Source of the DNA: Macrostomum lignano
Taxonomy: Eukaryota
Length of the DNA stretch: 64,000 bases
Reading direction: 5' to 3'
NCBI GenBank assembly: GCA_002269645.1
Contig: NIVC01000551.1
Coordinates: forward strand, 248,001-312,000
Of this stretch, positions 9,908 through 33,533 are shown piece after piece. Made by a program: the position numbers and the translations under genes. Below the pieces are notes generated by a model, which was not told where the DNA came from, did no database searches, and was given only the letters and a program-made list of their open reading frames with translations. Position 1 is the stretch's first letter; each line of letters opens with the position of its first letter.

Positions 9908-10086
9908 TCAGAATATTCCGCCGCTACTGTGACCGCTTCTAACGTCTTTTGAAGTCTATTGAACATTGTTTATCAAAATTTATCCATAACTGACATTTTC
10001 AAATCTTAGCTAAAAAAATCCAATCGTTTTAGGTACAAAAAATATTTTTTAATTTTAAAACATTGTTTTAAAACATTACTTAAATA

Positions 10087-11471: not shown

Positions 11472-11635
11472 ATGGCGTCACCATGCTGCTCTTGGTATTA
11501 TTTATGCCTTCGTTGTTGGTAAGTACAGAAGTCAGCAATTCCATTTACTCTCAGCTGACAGTATCGACCAAATTTTAATCGCAATGTGTTTATAGGATTG
11601 CTTGGAGCCAAGGAAGGTGTTGCTGTAGGCACTGA
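11472..11635 (+). CDS. A-type ultra-short Cys peptide A2 (28 aa)
   Basis: Exons 11472-11518 and 11596-11635, GTAAGT...TTTATAG, phase 2. MASPCCSWYYLCLRCWIAWSQGRCCCRH. Confidence 0.7.
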
Positions 11636-11859
11636 GCAGCATTTGAGCAGCATTGCTGCTGCTGCCAGTGCCACTGCCGCCACTGTGACCGCTTCTTACT
11701 CTGAAGTCGATTGAACAATGTTTGGAACGATAATTTATTGCTATACTCGTATTTATCTTTTACATCTTGGCTCAAAATTATTTTCTTTAATTTTTTGTTT
11801 TTAGAACGGAAATTTTGTTTTTAATTTAAAATTTTAACATTTCTTTAACTGTTTTTCAA

Positions 11860-12330
11860 AAGATCAATTACATGTAAATCCCTTTTTTAATACGAGCTAC
11901 ATTTGTTTTTATTGCCTGCTTAAATAAAAAAGGTTTTATGTGACGCACCAAACAGTTCATTCCAGCTATCAGAAAACAAAGTACATGTATCGGCATTCGT
12001 TCTTTATGTTTGGTAGCCTGAGAGTATAGGAACTCGTGGAATTGGAGATGGATTGTGGGGCCGCAACCGTCATTTCTCACTCAAACGAGGCCTCTGCGCT
12101 TCGGATGTCTATCGAAGTAAAACATGAGAGAACTTGAACTCTATGATTTCCATACGTTCAGACGAGAATGGTCCTATGTAAAGGATCGTTGCGATAATTT
12201 TAACCTTCCAATCATTACGACAACAGATCTCTACCACTCACACTGCAAAAAGAGAGCAATAATATGCGTATTGGCCTCAGTCGAAAAAGCTGGTTGACAA
12301 GAAAACAGTATTTTTGCAGAGTTGCTACTG
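11860..12330 (+). pseudogene. B-type degenerate paralogous block B1
   Basis: Homologous to 16335-16960 and 33765-34290. Contains TATCGAAG, as at the end of exon 2 of the 46.8-kb gene. No intact frame. Confidence 0.35.
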
Positions 12331-12424
12331 TCAATAGCGTGAAAAATTCATAAAAAACAAGTCTGTCCTGCAATAATCGTTCGTTTGCTCACTCCAAATC
12401 CTAATTTTAAATCCTAAAGGTCCG

Positions 12425-13002
12425 GATCAGAAAGAGAGTCAAGATCAGAGAGTCAGATCAGAGAGTCAGGATCAGAGAGAGTCAAGACCAGAGAGTCAGG
12501 ATCAGAGAGAATCAGGATTAGAGAGTCAGGATCAGAGAGTCAGGATCAGAGAGTCAGGATCAGAGAGTCAGGATCATCAAAGAGTCAGGATCAGAGAGTC
12601 AAGATCGTCAGTCAGAGAGTCAGGATCAGAGAGTCAGGATCAGAGAGTCAGGATCAGAAAGAGTCAAAATCAGAGAGTCAGGATCAGAGAGAGTCAGGAT
12701 TAGAGAGTCAAGATCGTCAGTCAGAGAGTCAGGATCAGAGAGTCAGGATCAGAGAGTCAGGATCAGAGAGTCAGGATCAGAGAGTCAGGATCATCGCAGA
12801 GTCAGGATCAGAGAGTCAGGATCAGAGAGTCAGGATCAGAGAGTCAGGATCAGAGAGTCAGGATTAGAGAGTCAGGATCAGAGAGTCAGGATCAGAGAGT
12901 CAGGATCAGAGAGAGTCAGGATCAGAGAGTCAGGATCAGAGAGTCAGGATCAGAGATTCAGAATCAGAGAGTCAGGATTAGAGAGTCAGGATCAGAGAGT
13001 CA
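12425..13002 (+). repeat. GAGAGTCAGGATCA satellite
   Basis: Direct tandem units. Confidence 0.97.
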
Positions 13003-13390
13003 CTTTTTGCGTTCGTGATTGTTTTGAATTCATAGTTTCAATTTTTTGAAGGCGATACCAAGTCGAGGGTGTGGCAACCAATGAAATGAAAAGCATTAAG
13101 TCTATCTGACCCATATCTTCCCCGGCTCAGTATACCAGTAACACAGTCTATCTTCTAGGCTCGTACGCTCGAACATGTACTGTACTACCTTAAGTACTGC
13201 CTTTTTCTGAGGACGGTTCTGCGTGAGGCTATTTCTGTCCGAAACGTTATGAACAAGAATATCGAGATTTTTCAGAGATGGTTTGCAACATAAAGGTTAC
13301 GGTGGGCCAATGTGGTTTATCAAATTATCAAAGGAGTTCCAAATTTTTACATGTCAGTTTAAACGTGTAAATGTAAAGAACAAAGAGCAA

Positions 13391-14809
13391 ATGTTCTGCG
13401 TTTGCCCAATTCCCCTTTGTCCATTGTGCGTGTAAGCTTCTGCTGCTGATACTTTTCTGTTACATTATGGCGATCAGTCAGTCAGTCAGTCAGTCTGTCA
13501 CCCACTCACTCAAGTCAGTCAGTCAGTCAGTCAGTCAGTCAGTCAGTCAGTCAGTCAGTCAGTCATTCAGTCAGTCAGTCAGTCAGTCAGTCAGTCAGTC
13601 AGTCAGTCAGTCAGTCAGTCAGTCAGTCAGTCAGTCAGTCAGTCAGTCAGTCAGTCAGTCAGTCAGTCAGTCAGTCAGTCAGTCAGTCAGTCAGTCAGTC
13701 AGTCAGTCAGTCAGTCAGTCAGTCAGTCAGTCAGTCAGTCAGTCAGTCAGTCAGTCAGTCAGTCAGTCAGTCAGTCAGTCAGTCAGTCAGTCAGTCAGTC
13801 AGTCAGTCAGTCAGTCAGTCAGTCAGTCAGTCAGTCAGTCAGTCAGTCAGTCAGTCAGTCAGTCAGTCAGTCAGTCAGTCAGTCAGTCAGTCAGTCAGTC
13901 AGTCAGTCAGTCAGTCAGTCAGTCAGTCAGTCAGTCAGTCAGTCAGTCAGTCAGTCAGTCAGTCAGTCAGTCAGTCAGTCAGTCAGTCAGTCAGTCAGTC
14001 AGTCAGTCAGTCAGTCAGTCAGTCAGTCAGTCAGTCAGTCAGTCAGTCAGTCAGTCAGTCAGTCAGTCAGTCAGTCAGTCAGTCAGTCAGTCAGTCAGTC
14101 AGTCAGTCAGTCAGTCAGTCAGTCAGTCAGTCAGTCAGTCAGTCAGTCAGTCAGTCAGTCAGTCAGTCAGTCAGTCAGTCAGTCAGTCAGTCAGTCAGTC
14201 AGTCAGTCAGTCAGTCAGTCAGTCAGTCAGTCAGTCAGTCAGTCAGTCAGTCAGTCAGTCAGTCAGTCAGTCAGTCAGTCAGTCAGTCAGTCAGTCAGTC
14301 AGTCAGTCAGTCAGTCAGTCAGTCAGTCAGTCAGTCAGTCAGTCAGTCAGTCAGTCAGTCAGTCAGTCAGTCAGTCAGTCAGTCAGTCAGTCAGTCAGTC
14401 AGTCAGTCAGTCAGTCAGTCAGTCAGTCAGTCAGTCAGTCAGTCAGTCAGTCAGTCAGTCAGTCAGTCAGTCAGTCAGTCAGTCAGTCAGTCAGTCAGTC
14501 AGTCAGTCAGTCAGTCAGTCAGTCAGTCAGTCAGTCAGTCAGTCAGTCAGTCAGTCAGTCAGTCAGTCAGTCAGTCAGTCAGTCAGTCAGTCAGTCAGTC
14601 AGTCAGTCAGTCAGTCAGTCAGTCAGTCAGTCAGTCAGTCAGTCAGTCAGTCTGTTAGTCAGTCAGTCAGTCATTATTACTGTACACTACTCAGAGCGGC
14701 CAAGTTAGCTGGAAGTTGCTGCTGCGTACATTGGGGAAAAAGAGCTCATCTGGTTTTTGCGGTTGCCGCTGCTGCAGCTGTGCTGTCGGTTTTTGCGCTC
14801 ACACCGTGA
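13391..14809 (+). CDS. T-type Cys-module gene T2 with C-terminal hydrophobic helix (51 aa)
   Basis: Exons 13391-13431 and 14695-14809; phase-2 intron almost entirely (TCAG)n. MFCVCPIPLCPLCVAAKLAGSCCCVHWGKRAHLVFAVAAAAAVLSVFALTP. Confidence 0.72.
13475..14672 (+). repeat. (TCAG)n microsatellite, intronic
   Basis: About 1.2 kb of near-perfect TCAG; source of the poly-SQSV ORF. Confidence 0.98.
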
Positions 14810-15960
14810 CGTCAATTTTAAACTTTCGTAAGTCTAATTGCCCAGAGAACATGAACTAATTGTTTGCAGAACATGGGCATACAACCAACAGTGTATCAAT
14901 GAGTTTTGCTTAATAACTGGCATCTTTCATTTGGACTTGTAATGTAATTGCTATTGGGTCTATATTTAAATCATGTCTCGATAGATATTTCTATAATTAT
15001 ATTTATTAAGCTGATATCTACTTCCATAATTCGATTAAAAAAGTTTCAACATTGTCTGACTGACTGTCAACTGACGGAAATATAGTTTAAATTACCAAAT
15101 TATCATGAATTTTAATGTTATGAATTTCTATTTAGTCTATACAATTTTTCTTAAAAATAAATTATAAGAAATACTCTAAGATCTACTAAACTCTACTTTC
15201 TATACGCTGCATGCACTTACAGGCTACAATAAACTGGAATGTTGTACCTCTTCGCTGATCTATACTTAGCGCAGGCGTTGAGACTATTTATAAATTTAAT
15301 GTTTTCTGTTTCTCTCTGCGTACTATAGCCATAGTGGAACTTACACTGGCTAGCTACATGTACGTATCATATATGTGTACGCTCGTACTATGCATGGTGC
15401 AGCCGGTAAGGATTTCCAATCTAATTTAATAAACAGCTATACCGAAACCTATACTCATTGTTTTTTTCTAGGAGTGCTCCTACATTGTTGAATCGTAAAG
15501 CCCTTTTTTAAAGTTGATTTATTATCAATAGTTAAAGTTAAGTAAATTTCGTTTAAGACGCTTAGTTGTAACTTTGCGACAATAGAACTTTTTTGTCATC
15601 AACTTTCAATCTTTAGCTGCTAACCAGCAGACAAACTAGTGAATACTCGATCTCTGATTTGAATCGATTCACCAAGATGCAGAGCAAATTTCGGTGTAGA
15701 TTACGAATATGGGACAGGTGGATAGAATACATCCAGAATATTTCCACCTAGAATGGATGAGATCACTGTTGAGAACAGGGTACCAGTAGAACTGTGTAGA
15801 ACAGTTAGGTTCTGACATTACAATTCTGACAATGACGTCTACATGTGATAATACAGATGAGACATTTAATGAGCCACGGCCTTCGACAGGGCTTTCTTAA
15901 TTTTTGTGGAAGCATATTTCGGTAATTTCTTTTTAAAACGGACATCACGCGCACAACACT

Positions 15961-16126
15961 ATGTCGACCCCATGCTGCCCTTGGGGCATTTTGTGCCGTA
16001 ATTGTCGGTAAGTACAGAAGTCAGTAATTGCATTCACTCTCAGCAGTCAATCATCGACAAAATTTTAAACCACAATGCGTTTATAGGGATGCTTGGGACG
16101 AAGGAAGGTGCTGCTGCAGGCACTGA
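15961..16126 (+). CDS. A-type ultra-short Cys peptide A3 (28 aa)
   Basis: Exons 15961-16007 and 16087-16126, phase 2. MSTPCCPWGILCRNCRDAWDEGRCCCRH. Confidence 0.72.
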
Positions 16127-16334
16127 GAAGCTGTGACCACTTCTGACTTCTTGAGAAGTCGATTAAAAACTGTTCATGACACTAATTATACATTCATCTC
16201 TGACATATTGCCTTAAGAACTTTTTAAACTCTATTTTCTAAACAAAAAATTGTTTTTAATTTTTACCAATTTTTCAAACTTTTTTCTTAAAAATACTTAA
16301 ATCTCTTTTCTGAAGTAGTTGCGTTTTTATTTTT

Positions 16335-17092
16335 CACGATTTTTTCAATAAAAATGATTTTACGTGACGCACAAAAAGTACATTCCCGTCATCAGAAAAC
16401 AAAGCATTTAGTCTTTTACGTCTCGCAGCCTGAGAGCAGGATTCAGAAACTCGAGGAATGAAATGAGCGATGGACTGCAGGGCCATTGAGAAGTTTGGAG
16501 TGTGTGAGTTTGCTGAGCAGTTGTCTGTAGTCAAAGATCGTTCATTGGAAGTTTATCGAAGGAACCAGCTTGCTAGACTGACTATGACTTGCTAGACTCA
16601 TAAGCTACTATGAGTAGCTTATTAGAGAACGTGACTCTATGGTTTCCAGATGTTTATTGCGAGAATGGTCCTCTGTCCAGGAGTTGCGATACTTGGCCTT
16701 CCAATCCTGCAGTAATAGATTTCTACACTCAAACATCACACTCACTGCGAGAGTGTAGAAAGTGAAAGCAATAAAATTAGTTAATGAGGCAATAGCGCTA
16801 GCCTAATAATAATAGTAAATCTTAGGGTTAATAATTACTTCCCTACTGAAAATAAGTATTCTAAATGAAATGAGTCCAAATGAAAATAAGGTAAGCGCTG
16901 ACTCTCAGACTCCAGCAATAAGCAAAATTCTTATTGGCCTCTAAATTAGCAAAGCAAATGATTACAGACAAAAGTGCAGGCTCACCTGAGGCCTGCATGA
17001 TGCTGGCTGCTGATGCTGTAGGTGCTGTAGATGCAGTTGCCAGCACGGTTCCCTGCAGATAGACAGAGAAACGCAAAAAACTTGAGAGTTCT
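16335..17092 (+). pseudogene. B-type degenerate paralog B2
   Basis: Block homologous to B1 and B3. Near 17000-17050 reads GC*CCRCCRCSCQH, resembling a CCC-x-H exon with an in-frame stop. Confidence 0.4.
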
Positions 17093-17099
17093 TGCGCAC

Positions 17100-17565
17100 A
17101 CGCGCTCACAAAACAGACGAGAGAGAGGTGGGCGGCTGCGGTCTAGGCTGAGACTCAACGCCTGCAAGTCAGATACGAAACAGACACTCACAGTCGCCCT
17201 CGTCCATGGCGATTCCGCTCCGTCGGCTGGTGCAGAAGAACCCGTGCCAACGGGACTTGGTCGCTGCGGCTGACTCCGGAGGCAGTGACCCAGCAGCATC
17301 TGGCGGCGCCGGCGCAGGGTGACGCTCAGATGTGGAACGCCGGCGCGGCCCATCAGGTCTCTGACGGCAACTTCTCGGGGTAGTGCACGCCCAGGGTGTA
17401 GCGCAGCACGAAGAGCGCGTCCAGGGCTCGCTCTCGTGTGTCGGTCATCGGCACCGCTTCCATGCCGTACAGGAGGATCGGCTCCACGGCCACACAAAAG
17501 AGGCGCACCTTCAGACCATCCCTCGCAGATAAGTTGAAGACGTTCCTGAGCAGGTGCGCCGCATG
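17100..17565 (-). mobile_element. RTE-like LINE, C-terminal ORF fragment
   Basis: KVRLFCVAVEPILLYGMEAVPMTDTRERALDA...RRRRQMLLGHCLR, typical of the post-RT region of RTE-clade elements. Same family as 34300-34460. Confidence 0.75.
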
Positions 17566-17929
17566 CAATGGTGGGTTCAGCACGCCTGGATTGAAGAGTA
17601 AAGTTTTGCTTATTTCATTGTACTCATCATTTGCCTATTTTACCTGCCCCCCTCCGCGCCTCACGCCACCTTTTCTCACCGCCTCCATATTGATTTGTTA
17701 TAACGTACATTGCAAGTCATGCACACTTACAACCCCCCCCCCGCTAAAGCCTGTGTCAACTCCGCCATATATTATATTGAGAATAAATATACCTAGCTCA
17801 AGAGTAGACTGCGCGAAACCCCCCTTGGTGATTTTGTTCTGCTACGATTGTCAATTGCGAGGCTAGCCGCCAAGTGCTGAGTTCTCAGTTCTTAAGAATC
17901 TCTTGTTAACAACGCCTGTGTATCCCCAG

Positions 17930-20900
17930 GCTTACGAGCTACGGTCTGCGATCCTACACACCTGCACCCCCTCTATTCTGGTGCAGGAATGGCAGGAGAA
18001 CTCTCTCCCAGCTGACGCATGTGTTCAAGCTGCTGGACTGACTGGGCTCCGGCGGCGGCAACCCATCCGTGGCCTGCTGGCCAATTATGGTACGGGCCCC
18101 GCCCGGAAGTGAACCTGTGCGTATCAGGTATCTCTGGCCACGGCTCTGAGGAACAGGTATCACCCTCTGACCTTAACAGGGTATGCGGCCAGTCCGCAGG
18201 CTCCGGGGACGGCCTCTTGTCCCCCTCAAGGGCCCAGTGTACCACCGTGCTGATGGTCCTTTGGTTCGGCCTCTGGTTTTTCCAAGCCGGGCTCTTAGCC
18301 GGGGAGTTTCTCGGTTGCTAGCGGTCGGGCCGGTAAGGGCTTAAGCTACCCCCGGTCGCTACCTCTCGCCTGGATGTTGGGTTTGGGGTTACTTGCCCAG
18401 CAGCTTCTCACCTCTAGTCCCCATTCGCCTTTCAGCGAATCATGGAGTATTCATTTTCATCCAACATGTCCGAGGCTGCTGGAGCACCAACCGAGCTTGG
18501 TATCGCGGCCCAGCCGGACATTCGCAACACTGGAACCCCCGGTGCCTCTCAGTCAGCCCCTGCCGCCGCTCAGGACAATGCCGGACAACAGGAAAGCGGA
18601 CCTCAGATCTCTAAAAAGAAGGCCCGTAGCATTGCTCGCTAAAAAGCTTTTCTCCAGCGCAAAGCGGAGGAACGGAGGAGTGCGAAAGCCGCCTCTCCGG
18701 CCACCTCCGAGGAGGGTGCCAGTAACTCTGCGAATCCCGCAAAGGAGCCGACATCCGACAAGGGGGCGGACCTCGCGCCGGTCAGATGCATCAGGTGCCG
18801 CCGAAGCTCCTGGTGCGGCTGGCCCCTCCCGTGACGGGCCCTCTGTCCGTGTGGAAGCTCCCACGGCCGTGGAGGGATCCAAAGCGGGGGGGGGGTGCTG
18901 GCCAAACCACCAAGCCAAAGCGCACCTATGCGGCTATGGCCAAGAGGCAGCCGGCCCTGATCATTCAAGGCCAGGAGACGCCTCTTATGGCCGAACAGCT
19001 CGACCAAATCTGGCGCAGGCTGGACTCCCACCTGGTCAAGATGGCCTTGAACTGTACCGCTATTCCAGTCCAAAATACGAAAGTCGAGGACCAAGCCCTT
19101 CAAATCCAGCCCGCCGACAGCCAGTCTGTACAGCAGCTCCTCGAGATGTTGAAAATCTTCGACTGGGGTACGGAGCTGGAAAACTTGTTTATCTACAGGG
19201 AGGACGAGCGACCCCGGACACACCGGCACCATGCCTGGATTCCGGCTCGCAGCTGCATCACCAAGGCCGACGAGCTGCGTCGCCTGCTAGTGGCTACTGT
19301 AGTGACTGGCTGCTAACTGGCTATTCAGCAGCATTCACTAGCTGTTCCCAAGAGCGCTGTGATCCGCTGCACAGCAGCTCAGTCCACCTGATCTAGTGAG
19401 AGAGATACCCTGTGCTGGGCTTAAGTGTTTACTGCCCGATGACTCATCGCCTGAGCGGGCGCGGCAGCCACACTCAATATCTTCCCCTCTCGCGCTGAGG
19501 AGCTGTAGCAGGATGACTCATCACCTGCGCGGAGTGTAAAGGCTGCCTAGAGGGAGTAAACAGGATGACTCATCCGCCCAAGTTCTATTTTTAGCACAGA
19601 AAAGCACGTGACTGTGCACGCACACTGTGCGTGGCCACTGACCTTGAGTCACGCCACTGCTGCGTGACAGGGTTGCCTTATTTGGAAGTCGGCCTTGGAT
19701 CACGCGTTGCTCGCATGATCCTGTTGACCAAATAAGGAAGTTTCACGCGCTCACTTTTGGGGGTCCGCTCGACTATAAATACGGAGCATCTGGGAGCCAT
19801 TTTTCTCCAGATCACGTTCACCGGCGTCGTCTCGCAGAGCATCGTGGCTAACTCGTGAAGCCTCCTCCGAGCTCTCCTCTCTCATTTCAGGTTTTTCAGG
19901 TTTTCAGGTTCGAGCAGCATTCTACAAGAACGATCAACTGTCGAGACATTTTCAGATTTGCCTTTGCTCCGAGCGACTTTGTTATTTTATTTCAGGTGAC
20001 GGATAGACAACTCTGCCGACGCGTCGAGTCCGCACACCAAGGAGGCAGCAACCCTACCGAGTCTAAGGCTAACGTTTTAGGTTCCTTTTTAGGCAAATCG
20101 ATAGGTAGTACAACGGTACTATCTAGCTACTTCCGGAGCAGCGAGTTCTATTTCTAGGAACATCTTCAAGAACTCGGGAAGGAGCGTAACACTACCAACC
20201 CGGAGCTACCGGCCAATGGCGTCGTAGTTCACGAGACCATCTCCAAGCCGGGCGAAGACGGTTTCACGGCTATTCTTGCACTGTCGGATAGCTGGATGCT
20301 CCGCTATCTGGACATGTCCCTCATCTCTGTCGGGCTGTTGCAGATTCAGCTCTTTAGCTTTGAGTCTGACGCCACTCGCCCACCGTCCCCGGAGAAGCGT
20401 AAGCGGGCGAGCAGGGGGCTCTGCCGGGCGGAAACGCCTAGGAAAAGAAGCTCCCGGTCGTCACGACCCCTCCGAGGACGTGGACCCCGTCAGCGGGAAA
20501 GCCGCGAAAGCTGCAGCAACAGGCGGCCGTGGAAAGGGTCGGAAGCCTGCCAGGAACACTATCCGTTCTGGTCTGACTCAGCGCGCGAAGCAGCTGCTGG
20601 ACACCGCCAAGGCCAACAACCGCAGCAACCCCCAGCCCAATGTCACCACTGCTGCCCCCCCCCCTGGAAAACCGGGCCGAGAGCGAGAATGCCGACCTTG
20701 TGGTGGCCCCGCCCTCGACCATGGAGACCATCCGGGAGGAGCCCATGGAACTGGAGCCTGGAGCTATCGGCGAGGCAGAAGAGGCGGCTCTCCTGCACAA
20801 CTCGTCTTGAGCCGGCAGGAAGCTGCGCGGACCACTCGTGGAATCCCCAGAGTGGACATCCTGCAGCTAAACTTACACCACTGCATCGTGGCCTCGACCA

Positions 20901-22912
20901 ACCTGATGCAGGTGGCAAAATTTGGGAAACCGGGCATCATCCTACTTCAGGAGCCCTGACAGCCCATGAGGCTTCCTGTCCTATTGAAGCCTACAAAGGC
21001 AAAAAATCCGCCCTCTGGTGGCACCCGGCGCTTGGATCCCTCCGGCGCAAGGCAAAGTGCCTCCAACGGAAAGCTCGCAAGAGCAAGGACCCAGCCGACC
21101 TGGCCGCCTATCAAGACGCGATTCGCGACTTTAAGCGTGAAACCAGGAAAGCCAAGTCCGACAAGTGGCGCCAATACTGCGCGGAGTTAGAAGGCACCCG
21201 CCCTACTTCACGCGTGGTTAAGGCTCGCACCCTCGACAAAATGTCAAAGCTCTCAGTCATTAAAAGACCGGACGGCCGGCTCGCTGAGAACCCAGGGGAA
21301 TCGCTGGACATCATGCTCACCAGCTCTTTCCCACGTGCCGCACCGCAGCTAGGCCCACCGGACCACTCTCCGGGCGGACAGATCCTGGCTTCGACCATCA
21401 TTACTAGAGAGAAGACGGCTCGCGCCGCAAAATCCTTCTCTCCTTTCAATTCACCGGGACCTGACAGCATTTATCCTGCCTTCCTCCATGAGGCAGTTAA
21501 AAATGACAGGTTTCTCGGCCTCCTCTGCAACCTCTTCAAGGCCAGCATTACCCTCGGGTGCGTGCCAAAAGCCTGCCAAGAGGCCACGGTGGTCTTCATA
21601 CCCAAACCAGGGAAGCTACGGAGACTATCATTCTGCCAAAGCTTACCGCCCTATCAGTCTGACATCTTTCTTCCTCAAACTGATGGAACGGCTGGTGCTC
21701 TGGCGCCTTCTCCTCGTTGAGCTGAGGAACTCCCCGCTCTCCCCCAATCAACACGCCTTTCGTCCTAGACGCTCCATCGAGAGTGCGCTGCACGCCATTG
21801 TCGACAAGCTGGAGCGCGCCGTGCTTGGCAGTGGATACGCGCAGTCGCTTTTCCTCGACATTGATGGTGCTTTCAATAATGTGCTCTTTGGAGCCTTTAG
21901 GCGGGCCCTGGAATCCCGGGGCACGCACGAGCAACTTATCTGCTGGATCATCATGTACATGATCTGCCATCGTACTGCCACCTCGCACCTCCTGGGACAC
22001 TCCCGCTCCGTGGAAGTCCAGAAAGGCGGACTGCAGGGTGAAGTCCTCAGCCCGATCCTCTGGAATTTAGTCATGGACGAGCTGCTTTGCAGCCCGCATA
22101 CGGACCCAGTTCAGAAGGTCGGCTATGCGGACGATGTTACCGCCACCGTGGCTGGACCGTCACCCGTTGTCCTCAGGGACCTCCTTCAAGCCTTCATCCA
22201 CCGTGCCGAGCGCTGGGCACATAGCTGCGGTCTCAGGTTCTCTGAGTCTAAAACCGTGGCTATCATGTTCACCAGCCGCCGAAACTGGAGGACTGAGCTG
22301 CTCTCCCTCTATGGCAAACCCGTTGCCATGGAGAAACAAACTAGATGTCTGGGCGTCACCCTCGACCATAGACTGAGCTGGACCCCGCACGTCCAAACCA
22401 AAGTCCGCAAAGCTCTCGCGACTCTCGCGCAGATCCGCAGAGCTTTCGGTGCTACCTGGGGCCTCACCCCCGCCGCCTCTGGTGGATTTACACTGCCATT
22501 GTTAGACCGGCCATCTCCTTCGCCGGCTTCATTTGGAACAGTGCCCTAGAGGTGAAAGGGGTTCTTGAGGTTTTAAATAGGGTGCAAGGCCGCGCTTGTC
22601 AAGCTATCATGAGCGCGGCTCCCTCTACGCCCTTTGCTGGCATGAACTCCTTCTTGGACATTCCCCCCTCGACCTCTTTGTTAGAGGGGAGGCAATGAAA
22701 GCCACCTGCCGTCTGCTTGACGCGGGTGTCCAAATGCAGAAGCAGTTCGCCTTTAGAAAGCGGAACCTCTGGCCGCATGGCGACCTCAACCTGCGAGACC
22801 TGGAAGCAGCGAGAGGCCTGCTGACCCTCTCGGACGGAATCCCGTCCACGCTCTGCTCTCGGCTCAAATTCAAAACCAGCATTCCACCACGCCATGAAGC
22901 AAGAGATAACTC
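17930..22912 (+). mobile_element. Decayed LOA/R1-like non-LTR retrotransposon
   Basis: ORF1 from 18442 (stop, frameshifts, LTR insertion) aligns to ORF1 at 57286. APE start VDILQLNLHHC...QEP near 20850 is followed by a ~0.7-kb deletion. RT with FLDIDGAF, QGEVLSP and YADD is frameshifted. Truncated at the RNase H start by satellite. Confidence 0.9.
19298..20191 (+). mobile_element. Solo LTR (894 bp) with 4-bp TSD
   Basis: TGT...ACA termini with CTAC duplicated at 19294-19297 and 20192-20195. Removal restores ORF1 RRLLVATNPELPANG. Contains TATAAATA at 19774, three TGACTCA sites and a MEF2-consensus site. Confidence 0.85.
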
Positions 22913-23842
22913 AGGAGTCAGGATCAGAGAGTCAGGATCAGAGAGTCAGGATCAGAGAGTCAGGATCAGAGAGTCAGGATCAGAGAGTCAGGATCAGAGA
23001 GTCAGGATCAGAGAGTCAGGATCAGAGAGTCAGGATCAGAGAGTCAGGATCAGAGAGTCAGGATCAGAGAGTCAGGATCAGAGAGTCAGGATCAGAGAGT
23101 CAGGATCAGAGAGAGTCAGGATCAGAGAGTCAGGATCAGAGAGTCAGGATCAGAGAGTCAGGATCAGAGAGTCAGGATCAGAGAGTCAGGATCAGAGAGT
23201 CAGGATCAGAGAGTCAGGATCAGAGAGAGTCAGGATCAGAGAGTCAGGATCAGAGAGTCAGGATCAGAGAGTCAGGATCAGAGAGAGTCAGGATCAGAGA
23301 GTCATGATCAGAGAGTCAGGATCAGAGAGTCAGGATCAGAGAGTCAGGATCAGAGAGTCAGGATCAGAGAGTCAGGATCGGAGAGTCATGATCAGAGAGT
23401 CAGGATCAGAGAGTCAGGATCAGAGAGTCAGGATCAGAGAGTCATGATCAGAGAGTCAGGATCAGAGAGTCAGGGTCAGAGAGTCAGGATCAGAGAGTCA
23501 GGATCAGAGAGTCAGGATCGGAGAGTCAGGATCAGAGAGTCGGGGTCAGAGAGTCAGGATCAGAGAGTCAGGATCAGAGAGTCAGGATCAGAGAGTCAGG
23601 ATCAGAGAGTCAGGATCAGAGAGTCAGGATCAGAGAGTCAGGATCAGAGAGTCAGGATCAGAGAGTCAGGATCAGAGAGTCAGGATCAGAGAGTCAGGAT
23701 CAGAGAGTCAGGATCAGAGAGTCAGGATCAGAGAGTCAGGATCAGAGAGTCAGGATCAGAGAGTCAGGATCAGTGAGTCAGGATCGGAGAGTCAGGATCA
23801 GAGAGTCAGGGTCAGAGAGTCAGGATCAGAGAGTCAGGATCC
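22913..23842 (+). repeat. GAGAGTCAGGATCA satellite
   Basis: Direct tandem units. Confidence 0.97.
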
Positions 23843-24467: not shown

Positions 24468-24489
24468 GTAAGATCTGTACTTACTTTTG

Positions 24490-24770
<281 letters not shown>

Positions 24771-25084
24771 CTTGAATTGAGTTGGCCCGAGTGATGAGAA
24801 CGCCTTCACCCATCAACAGTCCTAGTGGCAATCGTTTTTTAAAACCCATTTATTCCGAATATGATTACGAGCAAATTTATTTTCTTACGAGGCCAACTCC
24901 TCCTCTGGAGGAGAAAGGGGAAGAACTCCCATCACCGGAATCCATTCCCTGAAATCCATCAGCTGAAATTCCATGACTTGAATCCCATCTTCCAAATCAT
25001 CTCCAAATCCTCTGTAAAGCCTTTCAAATACCATATCTTGTTTTCCCTGTTCGCAAAAACTGACTGCCATTGTCCAGACTCAGA

Positions 25085-25505
25085 TTCTTCTGTCTCCTCT
25101 CTTCTCTTTTCTCTCCTCTCACGTCTCTCATCTCTACTACCTTATTTATCTCTTCTCCCTCGTCTTTCGTCTTTCTCTCCTGTCTCCTTTATCCCCTGTT
25201 TTCTCCTCTCTCCTCTCTTCTCTCCTCTCTCATCTCTCATCCCTCATGCCTCATCTCACTATTTCTTTCTCCTCTACTCTCAGCTCCTCTCTTCTCTCTC
25301 CTCTCATCTCTCCTGTCTCCCTCTACTATCTCATATATTCCCTCTCATCTCCTCTCTCCTCTTTTCTTCTCTCTCCCTCTTCGTTCCCGCCTTACTCCCC
25401 TCTTCTCTCCCATCTGTCATGTCTAATCTGTCCTCTCTCATCTCTACTCTCTTTTCTATAATCTCTTCTCTCTTCTCTTTTCACTCTTCTCTTTACTCTC
25501 TTTAC
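25085..25505 (+). repeat. CT-rich low-complexity tract
   Basis: Degenerate TCTCC/TCTC; source of spurious Ser/Leu-rich ORFs. Confidence 0.9.
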
Positions 25506-25544
25506 TGACTGACTGAAGATACCAAATCCATCAAAATCCCTCCG

Positions 25545-25760
25545 TGAAACAGAAATCCTCTCCGCGAAACAGAAATCCTCTCCGCGAAACAGAAATCCTC
25601 TCCGTGAAACTGGGCTCCATGGAAATCCTCTGAGTGAAACTGACATCCATCAAAATCGTCTCCGTAAAACAGAAATACATCTAAATTCTCTCCACGAAAA
25701 AAAATCCTCTCCGTGAAACCGAAAACCATCAGAATACTCCGTGAAACTGGACTCAATCGA
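25545..25760 (+). repeat. ~20-bp minisatellite (AAATCCTCTCCGTGAAACAG)
   Basis: Several perfect and diverged tandem units. Confidence 0.8.
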
Positions 25761-27267
25761 AATTTTCTCTGTCAAAAAGAACTTAACTCTCAGAATTCAT
25801 TGGTTAGGGTTAGGGTTAGAGCTGCACAGAGCTGCGTGTTGAATTAATTGAATCAATTAATTGCGCAAACCATTTCTCAGTCAGACAGTATCAGTCTTAT
25901 TTAAATTTAAATAAACGGTTGCGCAGTCTAAATCAACCCTCCAATACGCAGCGGCAGACCCCCTTCCAATACGCCCAACTTTATCTATTACGTCTCGCAA
26001 AACTGAGTACAATTTTTGCAGAAAGTTAAAAGTATGGAAATAGTTTTTTAAATGCGGTGCTTTTTCTTTTCATATTTAAAGCATACAACTTATATCCCCG
26101 AACTCAGCGCTGCAAGATCTTTCCAGCAATATAAGTCTCTTCTCTCAAAGTTTAAAACTCGAGGAACAGTTAGCGTTTGAAATTTACCGATTTCCCGACT
26201 GCTTGCTAGAGAAGCTCGCAAGTTTATTCATTGAATTTCACTGCCAAACTAATACACAGGGCTGCCAATAATAAAACCAAATGAATCTCGACACAGTCTA
26301 TCTATTTACACTGTACAACTGCTATGTACACTCAGCCCAAGCCCAACCCCCCGTTCTGGGGGAAGCATTAAATTTAACTCAACCCCCCAACACGCGGGGG
26401 GTTTTATTTGCATTGAACCCAGAACACGCGCACCCACCACCCCTCAATACACAGCGGCCCGCGGGCGGAGGTTGGGGTGGCTATTTTTACAAACTGGCTG
26501 CAGCCCCAGGCAGAGTGGCCAAAGAAGGTTATTGGGGGTTAAAAAAGCAGTTTTCTGCTTTTTTAGGGATGTTAAAATGTGAAAATTAAAAATTAAAATA
26601 GCCTAAAGCCTGCTCCGGAAAATTTGCAGTTTTCCCATATAAGTTTCGACGCTGACTTGCTAGTTGTCTAGGAGAAAAATCGCAACACACACACAATCAT
26701 CGCACCAGTTTTAGTATTAAGAAGTAATAGCTCGTAAGAAATCGATTTTTTGAGGTCATTTATTATCAAACGTGTTCATCACCTGCTCATTAAGTGGTGT
26801 TTTGGTTTAGTTTGATTTCCCTATTGCAATAAAACTACTAGTTATTCTTATTGTTTGATTTTGGAGCAGTAAAATACTTTTCTGCAAAACCAATTGCTTT
26901 TCCTTCAAGACTTAAGAGTGAAAATGGTGCCAAAATAAGTGCCAAAATGAGTGACAGTGGCGCCAAAATCTTACCAACATTATTGTGGCGCTAAAATGAC
27001 ATTGTAAGCAGCAGATTTCGTATGGTTTAGATTTCTTAGAAATTCAGCTAAACAGTACAACCTTGTCCCGAAAATCTGATTAGGTGCGGTGACTTCACCA
27101 GCTACATGTAACTCATGCTTAAAAATACATGGGGATTGCCAACCAGGTACTGCCTGGATGTCGCGAATATTTGTAAATCTTTGTACATATTTATCAGGAA
27201 AGTTGAAATCAAAGTTCGTCTCTTTTTGATAGTCGCAAAGCCAATCGCAACTTTTGAACTAAAAATA

Positions 27268-27640
27268 ATGAACATCTGCGAGAGCAAGCCAGCGATTGAG
27301 CAGTCGGTGCCTCCGGACAGCTGCTGCCCGTTCGGTCGGTTCGATTCATTTTCTTCTTGATGTAACTTTATACAGGAATACAGCTTAGGAATGAAGGAAA
27401 CCGAATGTAAACTGATGAAATTTTCAAAATATTTTCTTAAGAAAATGAGAGCTGAGAACTTCAATCAGAAATGCCGACTGGTGTGTTGCTGCAAGCACGG
27501 GAGCGAGCCTAAATACAAGCGTATAGCCCAGTATAAATTGCTGTGTATGTTGCTATGCTCAACATTGACAAGTTCTTTAAATTTATTCTTTCAATTTTAC
27601 AAAAAAAATTTCCTTTTCAGTGGATTACTGCAATTTCAGT
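27268..27640 (+). pseudogene. Degenerate Cys-module paralog F
   Basis: SCCPFGRFDSF (CxxC positions read TTC/TTT), followed by MRAENFNQKCRLVCCCKHG. No consistent splice path found. Confidence 0.45.
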
Positions 27641-28886
27641 ATCAGGATCAGAGAGTCAGGGTCAGAGAGTCAGGATCAGAGAGTCAGGATCAGAGAGAGT
27701 CAGGGTCAGAGAGTCAGGATCAGAGAGTCAGGATCAGAGAGAGTCAGGATCAGAGAGTCAGGGTCAGAGAGTCAGGATCAGAGAGTCAGGATCAGAGAGT
27801 CAGGATCAGAGAGTCAGGGTCAGAGAGTCAGGATCAGAGAGTCAGGATCAGAGAGTCAGGATCAGAGAGTCAGGATCAGAGAGAGTCAGGATCAGAGAGT
27901 CAGGATCAGAGAGTCAGGATCAGAGAGAGTCAGGATCAGAGAGTCAGGATCAGAGAGTCAGGGTCAGAGAGTCAGGATCAGAGAGTCAGGATCAGAGAGT
28001 CAGGATCAGAGAGAGTCAGGATCAGAGAGTCAGGATCGGAGAGAGTCAGGATCAGAGAGTCAGGATCGGAGAGTCAGGATCAGAGAGTCAGGATCAGAGA
28101 GTCAGGATCGGAGAGAGTCAGGATCAGAGAGTCAGGATCAGAGAGAGTCAGGATCAGAGAGTCAGGATCGGAGAGAGTCAGGATCAGAGAGTCAGGATCA
28201 GAGAGAGTCAGGATCAGAGAGTCAGGATCAGAGAGTCAGGATCAGAGAGTCAGGATCGGAGAGAGTCAGGATCAGAGAGTCAGGATCAGAGAGTCAGGAT
28301 CAGAGAGTCAGGATCGGAGAGAGTCAGGATCAGAGAGTCAGGATCGGAGAGTCAGGATCAGAGAGTCAGGATCAGAGAGTCAGGATCGGAGAGAGTCAGG
28401 ATCAGAGAGTCAGGATCAGAGAGAGTCAGGATCAGAGAGTCAGGATCGGAGAGAGTCAGGATCAGAGAGTCAGGATCAGAGAGAGTCAGGATCAGAGAGT
28501 CAGGATCAGAGAGTCAGGATCGGAGAGAGTCAGGATCAGAGAGTCAGGATCAGAGAGTCAGGATCAGAGAGTCAGGATCAGAGAGAGTCAGGATCAGAGA
28601 GTCAGGATCGGAGAGAGTCAGGATCAGAGAGTCAGGATCGGAGAGAGTCAGGATCAGAGAGTCAGGATCAGAGAGTCAGGATCAGAGAGAGTCAGGATCA
28701 GAGAGTCAGGATCAGAGAGACAGGATCAGAGAGAGTCAGGATCAGAGAGTCAGGATCAGAGAGAGTCAGGATCAGAGAGAGTCAGGATCAGAGAGTCAGG
28801 ATCGGAGAGAGTCAGGATCAGAGAGTCAGGATCAGAGAGAGTCAGGATCAGAGAGTCAGGATCGGAGAGTCAGGATCGGAGAGTCA
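27641..28886 (+). repeat. GAGAGTCAGGATCA satellite
   Basis: Direct 14/16-bp tandem units. Confidence 0.97.
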
Positions 28887-29360
28887 CATATTGTTCATAC
28901 TGTATGGCGCTCCTAAGAAGATATTCGGTACGGCGAATCCTGACAAGCTTTTTTACACTCTACAGATGTCCCGCTATACTCGTACAGTTGTGTGCAAAAT
29001 TGAAATTACGAACTTTTGAATTTATTTAATTTTTGAATTTATTGAAGGCGATACCAAGTTGAAGGTGTGGCACCAATGAATTTAATATCATTAAGCTTCT
29101 ATCTGACCGCACCTCCCCCGTCTCAGTACCCCAGAAGTATAGTCTACCCTCTATGCTCGTAAATGTACTGTACAATCTCCTCAGTACTACCTGGTTCTGA
29201 AGACTGTTCTGTTTGAGGCTATTGCTGTTAGAAACGTTTGCAACAAAAATATTCTCCCCCCAAATTTGTCTAACATATAGTTTCCAATGGACCCCTGTGA
29301 TTTTAAATCTGCTTGCTATTAGCATTTGTTAAATAGCCAGTTTAAAAGAATAAAGAGCTA

Positions 29361-30489
29361 ATGGTCTGCCTCTGTCCTCGTCCATTATACCTTTGTGTAC
29401 CATGTCAGTAAGTTTCTATTGCTGATGTTTGTGTTAAGAAATGGTGGCGTTACTGACTTAAGTAAGTGGTCAGTCAGTCATCCACTCACTCAAGTCAGTC
29501 AGTCAGTCAGTCAGTCAGTCAGTCAGTCAATCAGTCACCCACTCACTCAAGTCAGTCAGTCATCCACTCACTCAAGTCAGTCAGTCAGTCACCCACTCAC
29601 TCAAGTCAGTCAGTCAGTCAGTCATTCAGTCAGTCAGTCAATCAGTCACCCACTCACTCAAGTCAGTCAGTCATCCACTCACTCAAGTCAGTCAGTCATC
29701 CACTCACTCAAGTCTATCAGTCACCCACTCACTCAAGTCAGTCAGTCAGTCAGTCAATCAGTCACCCACTCACTCAAGTCAGTCAGTCAGTCAGTCAATC
29801 AGTCACCCACTCACTCAAGTCAGTCAGTCAGTCAGTCAGTCAGTCAGTCAGTCAGTCAGTCAGTCAGTCAGTCACCCACTCACTCAAGTCAGTCAGTCAG
29901 TCAGTCAGTCAGTCACCCACTCACTCAAGTCAGTCAGTCAGTCAGTCAGTCAGTCACCCACTCACTCAAGTCAGTCAGTCAGTCAGTCAGTCAGTCACCC
30001 ACTCACTCAAGTCAGTCAGTCAGTCAGTCAGTCAGTCAGTCAGTCAGTCAGTCAGTCAGTCAGTCAGTCACCCACTCACTCAAGTCAGTCAGTCAGTCAG
30101 TCAGTCAGTCACCCACTCACTCAAGTCAGTCAGTCAGTCAGTCAGTCAGTCACCCACTCACTCAAGTCAGTCAGTCAGTCAGTCAGTCAGTCAGTCAGTC
30201 AGTCAGTCACCCACTCACTCAAGTCAGTCAGTCAGTCAGTCAGTCAGTCACCCACTCACTCAAGTCAGTCAGTCAGTCAGTCAGTCAGTCAGTCAGTCAG
30301 TCAGTCAGTCAGTCAGTCAGTCAGTCAGTCAGTCAGTCAGTCAGTCAGTCAGTCATCATCTGTAAACTACTCAGAGTTGCCAGGATAGCCGGAAGTTGCT
30401 GTTGCGTACATTATTGGCGGAGAGCTCATCTGGTTTTTGCGGTTTCTGCTGCTGCAGCTGTGCTGCCGGTTGTTGTTCTTATACTGTGA
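29361..30489 (+). CDS. T-type Cys-module gene T3 with C-terminal hydrophobic helix (53 aa)
   Basis: Exons 29361-29407 and 30375-30489, phase 2. MVCLCPRPLYLCVPCQVARIAGSCCCVHYWRRAHLVFAVSAAAAVLPVVVLIL. Confidence 0.75.
29470..30355 (+). repeat. (TCAG)n/ACCCACTCACTCAAG compound repeat, intronic
   Basis: Direct tandem units. Confidence 0.97.
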
Positions 30490-31389
30490 CGTCAGTTTGA
30501 AGGGTCGGAAGTCTTAGTTCTCGCAGAGAACCTGAACGGCATCGTCTTCCCAAAAACTGTTGCTCCTCTGAAACAAAAATATGTTAAATAGCTATCTGTT
30601 TTACAAACTGGCAACAAAGCTTTTTCTCTCCGCCTGATTTAAATATTCAAAACTGTACGAGCGTTATCTGTGTGCCGAAATCAGTTGAAAAGAAATGTGA
30701 AAGAAATCAACATCCCCTCAAGTCTATGTATTGTAGTCATACGAAGTAAGCTCCATGTGTTACGAAGTAACTGATTGCAATAAACTAGTCCATACATAGA
30801 ACAGGCGTTGGATTCTATATATAGATTCACTGTTTTTTATTTCGCTGCGTACAAGCCATAGTGGAACATAGCTCGTACATTAGCTAGCTGCATGGCTGAA
30901 GATTTCCACTATCTACAAGCGTACTTATATCGCTGTACTATGCATAGTACATCCGTTTAATTACTTTCAATCTAGTTTAATGAGCAGCAATGCTCTATGT
31001 CTAACTCTGTAGAAATACTAATTGCAATACAATATACGGTTTCGTATTAGAGGTATGTTAAAGCACTGTTGAATCGTAAAGCACTACAAGATGATTCAGT
31101 TGGTAGTTAAAGTTAGCAGCATTCGGTTAAGATTCTTGGGGGTATCCTTGCTACAATTGAACTTTTATTGTCATCAAATTTCAGTGCTTGATAATAACCA
31201 GCCAATGGACAAACTATTGATAGTAGGCATTACTCGATCTCTGATTTGAATTGATTTCTTAATCGTTTTTTACACTCATAGGCTGTGATTTGCACAGATG
31301 AAAAGCAAATTTTGGTGTAAGGTACGAGTATGGGCAGGTGGACAGAATACATGCTTTTAAAATCCCGTAGGTAGAATGGATGAGATCTG

Positions 31390-31524
31390 TGCTGCCTTCA
31401 TCTTTGGTAAGTACGGAAGTTAATAATTGCATTCAGTCTCAGTATAGTCAGTAGTGAATAAATTTTTACGCAATTTGTTTATAGGATTGCTTGGAGCGAA
31501 GGAAGGTGCTGCTGCAGGCACTGA
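31390..31524 (+). pseudogene. A-type paralog A4, exon 1 deleted
   Basis: Donor at 31407 and exon IAWSEGRCCCRH* (31485-31524) retained. Deletion joins the upstream promoter block directly to the exon 1 end. Confidence 0.65.
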
Positions 31525-31529
31525 GTCGT

Positions 31530-32106
31530 TAGTCAGTCACCCACTCACTCAAGTCTGTCCCTCACTCAAGTTAGTCAGTCACTCAAGTCAGTCAGTCACT
31601 CAAGTCAGTCACTCACTCAAGTCAGTCAGTCACTCAAGTCAGTCACTCACTCAAGTCTGTCACTCACTCAAGTCAGTCACTCACTCAAGTTAGTCAGTCA
31701 CTCAAGTCAGTCAGTCACTCAAGTCAGTCACTCACTCAAGTCAGTCAGTCACTCAAGTCAGTCACTCACTCAAGTCTGTCACTCACTCAAGTCAGTCAGT
31801 CACTCAAGTCTGTCAGTCACTCAAGTCTGTCACTCACTCAAGTCAGCCAGTCACTCAAGTCAGTCAGTCACTCAAGTCAGTCAGTCACTCAAGTCTGTCA
31901 CTCACTCAAGTCAGTCAGTCACTCAAGTCAGTCACTCACTCAAGTCTGTCACTCGCTCAAGTCAGTCAGTCACTCAAGTCTGTCACTCACTCAAGTCTGT
32001 CACTCACTCAAGTCAGCCAGTCACTCAAGTCAGTCAGTCACTCAAGTCAGTCAGTCACTCAAGTCAGTCAGTCACTCAAGTCAGTCAGTCACTCAAGTCA
32101 GTCACT
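31530..32106 (+). repeat. CACTCAAGTCAGTCAGT ~17-bp repeat
   Basis: Direct tandem units. Confidence 0.93.
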
Positions 32107-32126
32107 ATTTTTCGTACATTACTCAG

Positions 32127-32235
32127 ACAGGCCAGGAGAGCTGGGATTTGCTGTTGTGTACACTGGCGAAGATTTCATCTGGTTTCTGCGGTTGCTGCTG
32201 TTACTGGTATTGTGACGTCAATTTTGAAAGTTTGA
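32127..32235 (+). pseudogene. Orphan T-type exon 2 (T4)
   Basis: QARRAGICCCVHWRRFHLVSAVAAVTGIVTSILKV*, open with a phase-2 acceptor. No T-type exon 1 upstream. Confidence 0.6.
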
Positions 32236-33372
32236 AAGCCCGCAGAGGACATGAAGTACCGTATCATGTGCTGCATTAAGTATCAATGAGTTTTGTTTAA
32301 TCAGAAGGATCTTTCTTTTTATTTCATTTAAATGTAATTTGCCCAACATATAAATGATTTTTCGACTGATATTTCTAAAATTATTCCTATAGGAAAGTTT
32401 CGACATTGTTTTCCCAACAACTGTTACTCCTGTCAAATGGCTACATGTACTCGTATATTTAGCAACATACTGACAAAGACACTTCTCTGGTACGGCGTCG
32501 ATCATTTAAGAGTATTTGCCTGTTTCGAAATTTCGAAACTGACAAAGAGCAATAACTTAGTGTAAAATGTTTTTAATGTCATGAATTTCTATTTTATCTG
32601 TAGAACTAAGATCCAATAAACTCTATACTTACTATACACACTGCATGCACTCACAGACTACAGTAAACTGGAATGTACCTCATCGCCTGATCTATATTAA
32701 GCGCTATTTATAAATGGAACGTGTTCGGGTTTCTCTCTGCGTACCATAGCTATCGTGGAACTTACACTAGCCAGCTACAATGGACAGGAGACATATACTA
32801 TGTACACATGGATGCACTCCGCATATTAAAACCGGTTAAGGATTTCCAATTTAATTTTATAAACATCTATACTCAATACTCTACTTATTGGTATTACTAC
32901 TCATTAGAATAACATTAAATTATTGTCGAGTCGTCAAGCACTTTTGATTCGTGACCAGATGATTTATTATTAATAGTTAAATTAAAGTAGCAACATTCGT
33001 TTAAGATGTTTGCTTGTAACTGCTACAATAAAACTTTTTTGTTGACTTTCAGTCTTTATAGCTACATGTACAAACCAACAGACTAGTGAATACTCTATAT
33101 CTGATTTGAATCGATTTGTCCAAGATGCAGAGCAAGTTTTGGTGTAAGGTACGAGTAGAGGACAGGTGGATAGAATACATCTAGAATACTTTCACGTAGA
33201 ATAGATGAGATCACTGTTGAGAACAGGGTAGAACCGTGTAGAACAGTAAGGTTCTGGATTACAACTCTGGCAATGACGCCGACATGTACAGATGAGGCAT
33301 TAATGAAGCACAGTCTCTGACGGAAGTAGATTTTTATATTTTCTTTCGAAACTGACATCTCGCGCTGACACT

Positions 33373-33533
33373 ATGTCGACATCATGCTGCGCTTTGAAGA
33401 AATGCCCTAATTGTCGGTATGTACAGTAGTCAGTAACTAAATTCAGTCCCAGCTGTCAGTATCGACTAAATTTTAACCGCAACGTGTTTGTAGGGCAGCT
33501 CGGAGAAACAACAGGTGTTGCTGCAGGCAATGA
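33373..33533 (+). CDS. A-type ultra-short Cys peptide A5 (27 aa)
   Basis: Exons 33373-33416 and 33494-33533, phase 2. MSTSCCALKKCPNCRAARRNNRCCCRQ. Confidence 0.7.

Follow-up and report, generated by a model that had tools for sequence, protein, structure and literature searches.

Signatures of coding constraint in a family of cysteine-rich microgenes of the flatworm Macrostomum lignano

Here, we present an analysis of a 64,000-nucleotide stretch of the Macrostomum lignano genome (contig NIVC01000551.1 of assembly GCA_002269645.1, positions 248,001 to 312,000 of the forward strand; hereafter, the window), which contains three intact, unannotated two-exon genes, A2, A3, and A5, each encoding a 27-28-residue peptide with seven Cys residues at aligned positions. 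The interval spanned by these genes, 11472-33533 in window coordinates, runs from the A of the A2 start codon to the final base of the A5 stop codon. Judged from sequence comparisons, the A genes form a family of unannotated microgenes that is lineage-specific and under real coding constraint. More specifically, A2, A3, and a fourth intact copy, A6, which lies on two paralogous contigs, are best explained as real microgenes kept by selection, and A5 as a divergent copy of like kind. The three peptides had been listed in a preliminary description of the window and are present exactly as given there, correct to the base; the conservation of the Cys scaffold, the intron position, and the stop codon that it claimed was confirmed in A2, A3, and A5.

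Coding constraint and anatomy of the A genes

The selection tests covered the four intact copies A2, A3, A5, and A6, with pairwise counts made by the Nei-Gojobori method (six pairs). Among the 81 coding columns, 39 are variable, while none of the 14 first and second positions of Cys codons varies (hypergeometric P=2.9e-5; p=0.003 versus the non-coding columns). Silent TGC/TGT differences are found at the third position of three of the seven Cys codons, and the count of nonsynonymous changes at the ~18.7 Cys sites was zero for each of the six pairs. Between A3 and A6, synonymous differences (Sd 7.2/16.3) and nonsynonymous differences (Nd 5.8/67.7) give a dN/dS of 0.14 (Fisher p=0.002), i.e., purifying selection on the whole peptide. 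We conclude that these substitution patterns reflect a translated peptide under selection in at least part of the A family.

Alternatively, the A copies could be functionless leftovers from the neighboring B-type genes (see below), or untranslated short open reading frames (ORFs) in non-coding transcripts, with frames and Cys codons that have survived only because the copies are young and homogenized by gene conversion. Such an origin agrees with the observations that two of the five copies in the window are clearly dead, that the promoter of A5 is damaged, that the array lies within satellites and undergoes recombination, and that the intron is better kept than the exons, as conversion tracts would leave it; moreover, the A genes are not annotated, and no expression evidence for them turned up in searches of the literature and supplementary tables. 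However, the coding sequences are 16-32% diverged and have accumulated silent changes in Cys codons without any change at the 14 constrained positions, and the A3-A6 comparison points in the same direction. In addition, the start codon, the splice sites, the stop codon, and the poly(A) signal are retained in exactly those copies in which the ORF is intact, which argues against decaying relics. We consider leftovers or untranslated frames unlikely.

The introns of A2, A3, and A5 are all GT-AG introns of 77-79 nt in phase 2, positioned two bases past the CxxC motif, and the stop codon is TGA in all three genes (Table 1). The Cys residues, which are arranged as CC, CxxC, and CCC with no CxC, make up 25-26% of the 27-28 residues, and Arg accounts for 3-6 residues (11-22%). 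The terminal motif is CCCRH in A2, A3, A6, and the remnant of A4, CCCKH in A1, and CCCRQ in A5; compared with the other intact copies, A5 has lost W8, W19, and H28. A2 has five aromatic residues in addition to His and A3 and A6 have two each in addition to His, whereas A5 has none. The density of potential ligands is eight per 28 residues. No signal peptide was found in the A peptides, in which the first Cys is already at residue 5. In-frame stop codons lie 8-14 codons 5' of the ATG in A2, A3, and A6 and farther 5' in A5. Because the stretch between this stop and the ATG contains no AG dinucleotide in A2 or A3 (read by eye), an upstream exon encoding a signal peptide is excluded for these two genes. 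In A2 only, a 43-nt insertion directly 3' of the TGA creates an in-frame ORF with seven further Cys residues, which may represent a module that is read through or a relic, or an accident of TGC repeats.

Common to the intact copies are the sequence AATGACGTC, similar to a cAMP response element (CRE), at approximately −120, the TATA-like sequence TTTTAAAAC at approximately −30, and an A at −3; in A5, the first two are altered (Table 1). A minus-strand reading of this promoter block as 'LIKC[IL]ICxCRRHC' (11340-11400, 15815-15880, and 33255-33320) was rejected as coincidental and non-coding because a start codon is missing and the stops do not agree between copies. An AATAAA signal is kept at +217 to +288 in the intact copies, giving 3' untranslated regions (UTRs) of ~220-290 nt, and is missing from the broken copies A1 and A4. 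The short intron is the best-conserved part of the unit, with pairwise distances of 0.08-0.18 compared with 0.18-0.25 for the flanks and 0.14-0.36 for the exons. We considered a structured RNA or spliced leader (SL) RNA within the A unit; however, neither an Rfam family nor a tRNA nor any covariation was detected, and the conservation of the intron is not accounted for by RNA structure or an Rfam family.

The spacers between the Cys residues diverge strongly, as the preliminary description had stated: 36 of 60 non-Cys coding columns are variable, compared with 146 of 408 pooled non-coding columns (5' flank, intron, and 3'UTR; 60% versus 36%; p=6e-4). In five of the six pairs, pN at non-Cys codons is 0.34-0.52 versus a pS of 0.10-0.26. 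That description took the divergence to suggest diversifying selection, and the excess of variable spacer columns is in line with this idea. However, the excess of replacements over the divergence of the 5' flank reaches significance in A2-A5 and A3-A5 (p ~1e-4 to 2e-4) and not in A2-A3 (p=0.15), i.e., only for pairs that involve A5, the copy with the damaged promoter, and A3 and A6 diverge under purifying selection. Because the intron is unusually conserved and the flanks are near the exons in divergence, using the intron alone as the neutral yardstick overstates the effect. Moreover, recombination between paralogs is demonstrated (see below) and can import blocks of differences and thereby mimic diversifying selection. 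We regard diversifying selection on the spacers as a reasonable reading of these data that is not proven.

Array turnover and the neighboring B family

A2, A3, and A5 belong to a five-copy tandem array, the units of which measure ~0.8-1.4 kb and lie without exception on the + strand, each between satellites; the remaining two copies, A1 and A4, are pseudogenes (Table 1). The paralogous contigs NIVC01000905.1 (L001) and NIVC01002882.1 (L003), with a mutual identity of 98.6% and ~96% identity to the window, both carry A6 (MLTPCCPWGILCGNCRAAWREGRCCCRH); no further A copy was found within 4.7 kb upstream of A6. On L001, the sequence 3' of the A6 stop codon is ~97% identical to that of A5, whereas the coding sequence, the promoter, and the sequence farther 5' are closer to A3. 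A6 is chimeric and, therefore, a recombinant copy. This indicates unequal crossing-over between array members, with copy numbers that differ between the subgenomes, and these alignments support that the array is evolving by unequal crossing-over or gene conversion together with duplication and decay; its turnover would thus combine tandem duplication, exchange between copies, and pseudogenization. On either side of each A unit lie long arrays of (AGTC)n or (TGTC)n as well as satellites of a 14-mer, (TCAGAGAGTCAGGA)n, and AGTCAGT occurs within the A intron itself. The satellites may be a driver of the recombination in the array.

Also on the + strand, the interval 38260-50248 holds a cluster of small genes rich in Cys and His, at least six in number, which we refer to as the B family; their order is B0 exon, orphan exon at 38885, B1, B4, B2, Bx, and B3. 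The reconstructed products of B1-B4 have ~87-102 amino acids (aa), contain 14-17 Cys residues and 8-12 aromatic residues, and share conserved non-Cys motifs; the deposited annotation is shorter for B3 and B4 (65 and 67 aa, respectively). B1 is fully annotated, and B paralogs are annotated on L001 and L003. The hypothetical proteins of M. lignano that belong to the B family are BOX15_Mlig003191g1, Mlig005498g2, Mlig028464g2, and Mlig004807g1; the locus matching BOX15_Mlig003191g1, window positions 31516-51988, corresponds to bases 279516-299988 of NIVC01000551.1 (assembly Mlig_3_7). B3 has a frameshift within an A10 homopolymer (49913-49922) and its L001 paralog (P0010, 95 aa) is intact; the frameshift could be a long-read homopolymer error or mark a real pseudogene. 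Satellites are found within intron 1 of several B genes. Between B1 and its L001 paralog, pN (0.062) is similar to pS (0.059) and all 14 Cys residues are kept, a regime like that in the A genes. The GenBank annotation of this genome was built from transcript assemblies, and transcripts classed as non-coding were left out (PMC5730564). Because the B genes were annotated from transcripts, they have RNA support, and the exclusion of transcripts classed as non-coding explains why the 28-aa A ORFs are absent from the annotation.

The A genes and the adjacent B genes are alike in several respects. They share the strand and the locus, a first exon encoding M-x(n)-CC-...-C-x2-C with the donor 2 nt past the last Cys, introns that are all in phase 2, and a terminal CCC-x-H motif (CCC-[KRHY]-H in B; CCC-R-H in A); in both families, there is no signal peptide, and the Cys residues are invariant while the non-Cys residues change quickly. 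In contrast, only the B genes have an additional middle exon of 153 nt (51 codons), which encodes AYxxWQNxKLG, CCYIHH, and CC-x3-C-x2-C and is absent from all A genes. Because the introns flanking this exon are in phase 2, it can be removed with the frame kept, and the result is the architecture of an A gene. In a regular-expression search, the exon-1 signature (ATG-CC-C-x2-C followed by the donor) had seven matches in the window, every one of them on the + strand, namely A2, A3, A5, and four B first exons, and none in 20 shuffles. On gene structure, the A genes resemble reduced relatives of the B genes that would have kept the B-type first exon and the terminal CCC-x-His exon minus the middle exon. 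Calling them minimal one-module genes, as had been done before, is fair in the sense that an A gene equals a B-type gene without its middle exon, the link being purely structural.

The B family was found only in M. lignano: when 5.8 billion clustered proteins were searched with a B profile, only M. lignano proteins were recovered, and HMMER, run in full over 1.84 billion representatives of the clusters, returned nothing but M. lignano proteins and one translated satellite. No Pfam family matched the B proteins, and the DUF2769 label that UniRef attaches to one B paralog was not reproduced in Pfam searches. The literature and searchable supplementary tables had nothing relevant on the Mlig gene identifiers or on Cys-rich, stylet, or metallothionein proteins of Macrostomum. 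For B1, AF2 gave an unstructured, unusable model (pLDDT 44).

Possible functions of the A peptides

We tentatively suggest that the A peptides could be cytosolic metal-thiolate micropeptides that are metallothionein-like without homology to any metallothionein (MT) family, an assignment that we hold to be possible but somewhat short of probable. Because the peptides have no signal sequence, they would be expected to remain in the cytosol or nucleus. Constraint would rest on the seven Cys residues and, in most copies, on the C-terminal His of CCC-[RK]-H; the seven thiolates, together with the imidazole where present, would wrap around Zn(II) or Cu(I) ions to form a small metal-thiolate cluster, and the spacers would be free or driven to change. 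The lack of a signal peptide and the odd or variable number of Cys residues (seven in A; 14-17 in B) favor metal ligation over disulfides, secretion, and acylation. The His residues beside the Cys clusters in both families (CCC-x-H and CCYIHH) and the ligand density point in the same direction, as does the disorder predicted for the metal-free chain, as in the model of B1.

The A peptides agree with the operational definition of MTs in their low mass, their Cys content within the range of ~15-30%, and their CC/CxxC arrangement. Close analogs in size are the Cu-metallothioneins of Neurospora crassa and Agaricus bisporus, which have 25-26 aa and seven Cys residues, are rich in CxC, and have no aromatic residues or His. 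The A peptides are like them in length, in the seven Cys residues at ~25% of the chain, and in being leaderless; they are unlike them in having CC, CxxC, and CCC instead of CxC, in their aromatic and His residues, and in that no metal-responsive promoter elements were found, and there is no homology between the two. The Cd-metallothioneins of Tetrahymena have CCC and CC clusters, and nematode MTL-1/2 have His and an occasional Tyr beside Cys clusters as well as a C-terminal His; a modular build that arose by duplication is a further parallel. However, the ciliate and nematode proteins are much longer than the A peptides and Lys/Ser/Gly-rich rather than aromatic, and no similarity to a Pfam family, MT families included, was detected.

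Several observations weigh against one part or another of this explanation, which takes in the genes themselves, their link to the B family, and metal binding. Pfam searches with the A peptides gave no family at E-values up to 10, MT families included, and an 83-aa concatenation of three A peptides had no candidate sharing three words among 5.8 billion proteins; a sequence search of PDB gave no significant match (best E=0.39). Classical MTs have few or no aromatic and His residues, which does not hold for A2, A3, and A6; the preliminary description had already noted that the aromatic residues set A2 and A3 apart from MTs, and the counts bear this out and extend it to A6. Similarly, the conserved non-Cys motifs and the aromatic residues of the B proteins argue against classical MTs. 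No core of a metal response element (MRE; TGCRCNC) was found within 600 bp 5' of A1-A4 and one was found at −560 of A5; the window as a whole has 41 such cores compared with a chance expectation of ~44, and the comparison presumes that flatworms use MTF-1 and MREs. The TATA-like element ~30 nt 5' of the ATG leaves almost no room for a 5'UTR, and A5 combines the loss of the His with a damaged promoter. At the sequence level, the similarity between A and B is not significant (nhmmer E>0.6; hhalign probability 2.8%), and the exon-1 signature was defined after the genes had been seen. Because of the aromatic and His residues, the missing match to an MT family, the lack of MRE cores, and non-Cys motifs in B that resemble those of folded Cys/His domains, filing the A peptides as metallothioneins is not justified. 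The analogy to MTs drawn in the preliminary description holds only as a chemical likeness.

Other functions can be envisioned for leaderless Cys-rich proteins. A and B could be intracellular Cys-rich structural or reproductive proteins (for example, cross-linkers of the sperm chromatin, sperm structures, or the stylet, which is formed intracellularly) that form intermolecular disulfides and change under sexual selection. Mammalian protamine P1 and the keratin-associated proteins (KAPs) are likewise small, basic, Cys-rich, leaderless, quickly evolving, and clustered, PRM1 has one short intron, and, as a weak analogy, a promoter with CRE-like and TATA-like elements resembles those of post-meiotic mammalian genes. 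The absence of a signal peptide, a net charge of +1 to +7, the vicinal CC/CCC motifs, the tandem clusters with their quick copy turnover, the fast evolution of non-Cys residues, and the finding of the family in M. lignano only are compatible with such a role, and fast evolution has been reported for reproduction-related genes of Macrostomum (PMC7336406). However, the Arg content of the A peptides is far below that of protamines (>~40%), there are no KAP-type repeats, the conserved His residues beside the Cys clusters point to metal ligation and not to disulfides, and the gene identifiers are absent from searchable supplementary tables; a structural or reproductive role is, in our view, quite unlikely.

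Another candidate function is that of multiply S-palmitoylated, membrane-anchored micropeptides in which the N-terminal CC and the C-terminal CCC are acylated and the hydrophobic or aromatic spacers lie at the membrane interface. The MxxxCC N-terminus and the R-CCC-R-H C-terminus, with basic residues nearby, resemble known dual-acylation motifs, and the spacer of A2 is very hydrophobic with its five aromatic residues. Acylation would leave the internal CxxC and the conserved His unexplained, A5 has no hydrophobic spacer, and polar motifs are conserved in the B relatives, which resemble folded Cys/His domains, all of which makes palmitoylation very improbable. Finally, the combination of kept Cys residues, hypervariable spacers, and a better-conserved intron and flanks could be expected for secreted, disulfide-knotted toxins or antimicrobial peptides in an arms race. 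Conotoxin- and defensin-type peptides show the same frozen Cys residues, changing loops, better-kept non-coding parts, and tandem birth and death; however, they are secreted prepropeptides with an even number of Cys residues, whereas the A peptides have no signal peptide, an upstream coding exon is impossible in A2 and A3, the whole product has 27-28 residues with Cys residues from position 5 onward, and every intact copy has seven of them. Secreted toxins are close to refuted.

Other features of the window and significance of the A family

The window is metazoan DNA with a GC content of 46% and is dense with tetranucleotide and 14-22-mer satellites and copies of long interspersed nuclear elements (LINEs). 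The coordinates of the A and B genes and their flanking features are given in Table 1.

Table 1. Positions of A and B genes, pseudogene copies, and associated elements (window coordinates unless a contig is named)
Feature	Position	Strand	Remarks
A2 gene	11472-11635	+	Product MASPCCSWYYLCLRCWIAWSQGRCCCRH
A2 upstream block	11353-11451	+	Conserved; AATGACGTC (CRE-like) at 11353; TTTTAAAAC (TATA-like) at 11443
A2 exon 1	11472-11518	+	MASPCCSWYYLCLRCW; phase-2 donor GTAAGT
A2 intron	11519-11595	+	77 nt; GTAAGT..TATAG
A2 exon 2	11596-11635	+	IAWSQGRCCCRH and TGA
A2-only ORF	11636-11704	+	AAFEQHCCCCQCHCRHCDRFLL
A2 poly(A) signal	11923-11928	+	AATAAA, 288 nt past stop
A3 gene	15961-16126	+	Product MSTPCCPWGILCRNCRDAWDEGRCCCRH
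A3 exon 1	15961-16007	+	
A3 intron	16008-16086	+	79 nt
A3 exon 2 and TGA	16087-16126	+	
A3 poly(A) signal	16347-16352	+	AATAAA
A5 gene	33373-33533	+	Product MSTSCCALKKCPNCRAARRNNRCCCRQ
A5 promoter	33272-33356	+	Damaged: CRE-like to TGACGCC; 20-bp deletion; TATA-like to TTTCGAAAC
A5 exon 1	33373-33416	+	One codon fewer than other copies
A5 intron	33417-33493	+	77 nt; GTATGT..TTGTAG
A5 exon 2 and TGA	33494-33533	+	W19 and H28 lost
A5 poly(A) signal	33750-33755	+	AATAAA
A1 pseudogene copy	~9330-9973	+	Start lost, frameshifted, acceptor shifted, no AATAAA
A1 exon remnants	9752-9791; 9869-9907	+	Exon-1-like; exon-2-like, reading IAWSEGRCCCKH and stop
A4 pseudogene copy	~31127-31524	+	~190-bp deletion takes promoter and most of exon 1 (its 5' part)
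A4 exon remnants	31393-31406; 31485-31524	+	Exon 1; exon 2, intact; satellite begins directly past stop
A6 locus	L001 1432-2600; L003 ~4396-5163		
Satellite arrays	7384-8360, 10086-10432, 12433-14673, 22911-23841, 27642-30355, 31545-32104, 35984-37587		
B0	38260-38340	+	Terminal CCCKH exon of further B-type gene
B-type first exon	38885-38923	+	MECCRRRNCNYC; no obvious downstream partner exons in contig
B1	41516-41988	+	Exons 41516-41583, 41670-41822, 41901-41988; 102 aa; identical to BOX15_Mlig003191g1
B4	43701-44770	+	Exons 43701-43738, 44468-44608, 44686-44770; satellite in intron 1
B2	46776-47285	+	Exons 46776-46849, 46995-47147, 47225-47285; 95 aa
Bx	48050-48154	+	Terminal CCCYH exon of further B-type gene
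B3	49294-50248	+	Exons 49294-49343, 49887-50038, 50155-50248; 14-mer satellite in intron 1

Just past (AGTC)n arrays, at 14722, 30402, and 32139 (+), there are Cys-rich open stretches without a start codon that read GFCGCRCCSCAVGFC and similar, followed by TGACGTCA and TTTTAAAC. These 'C-units' were considered as relatives of A exon 2 and rejected because their similarity did not exceed that of shuffle controls. A further Cys-rich stretch, at 4051, is the wrong frame of the last exon (4040-4192, +) of an IFI6/IFI27-like gene for a Gly/Ala-rich transmembrane protein. Two LINE-like copies with ORF1, reverse transcriptase, and RNase H ORFs lie at ~17000-23400 and ~55900-62500; the first is fragmented and located between A3 and A4, and its segment 19311-20183 has an inverted match in the second region. 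An exact-match look-up of a LINE ORF returned no record. An exon encoding a fibrinogen C-terminal domain (54493-55074, +) is 77% identical to BOX15_Mlig008989g1 and is apparently an unannotated or divergent paralog.

If the A genes are translated, they would be among the shortest intron-bearing protein-coding genes of animals with clear evidence of selection. Standard annotation is blind to such genes, as transcripts classed as non-coding were dropped from the GenBank annotation of this genome. A broader reading, which we consider doubtful, is that A and B together form a flatworm-born modular metallothionein system that extends from a 28-aa Cys7-His unit to 102-aa three-module proteins and is unrelated to known MT families. 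Parasitic flatworms are reported to be without metallothionein genes (PMC3561135), and such a system, if it exists, would supply the metal-buffering proteins reported lacking there. If the proteins bind metal, flatworms would thereby gain their first described metallothionein-like system, one also useful for toxicology in M. lignano, and the smallest unit, as a single translated microgene, would then be a natural experiment on the minimal size of an encoded metal-cluster peptide. Together, A and B may represent a compact example of a lineage-specific Cys-rich family that grows and shrinks by whole exons of one intron phase, and they illustrate how, in a recent polyploid, tandem arrays located within satellite DNA turn over between subgenomes.

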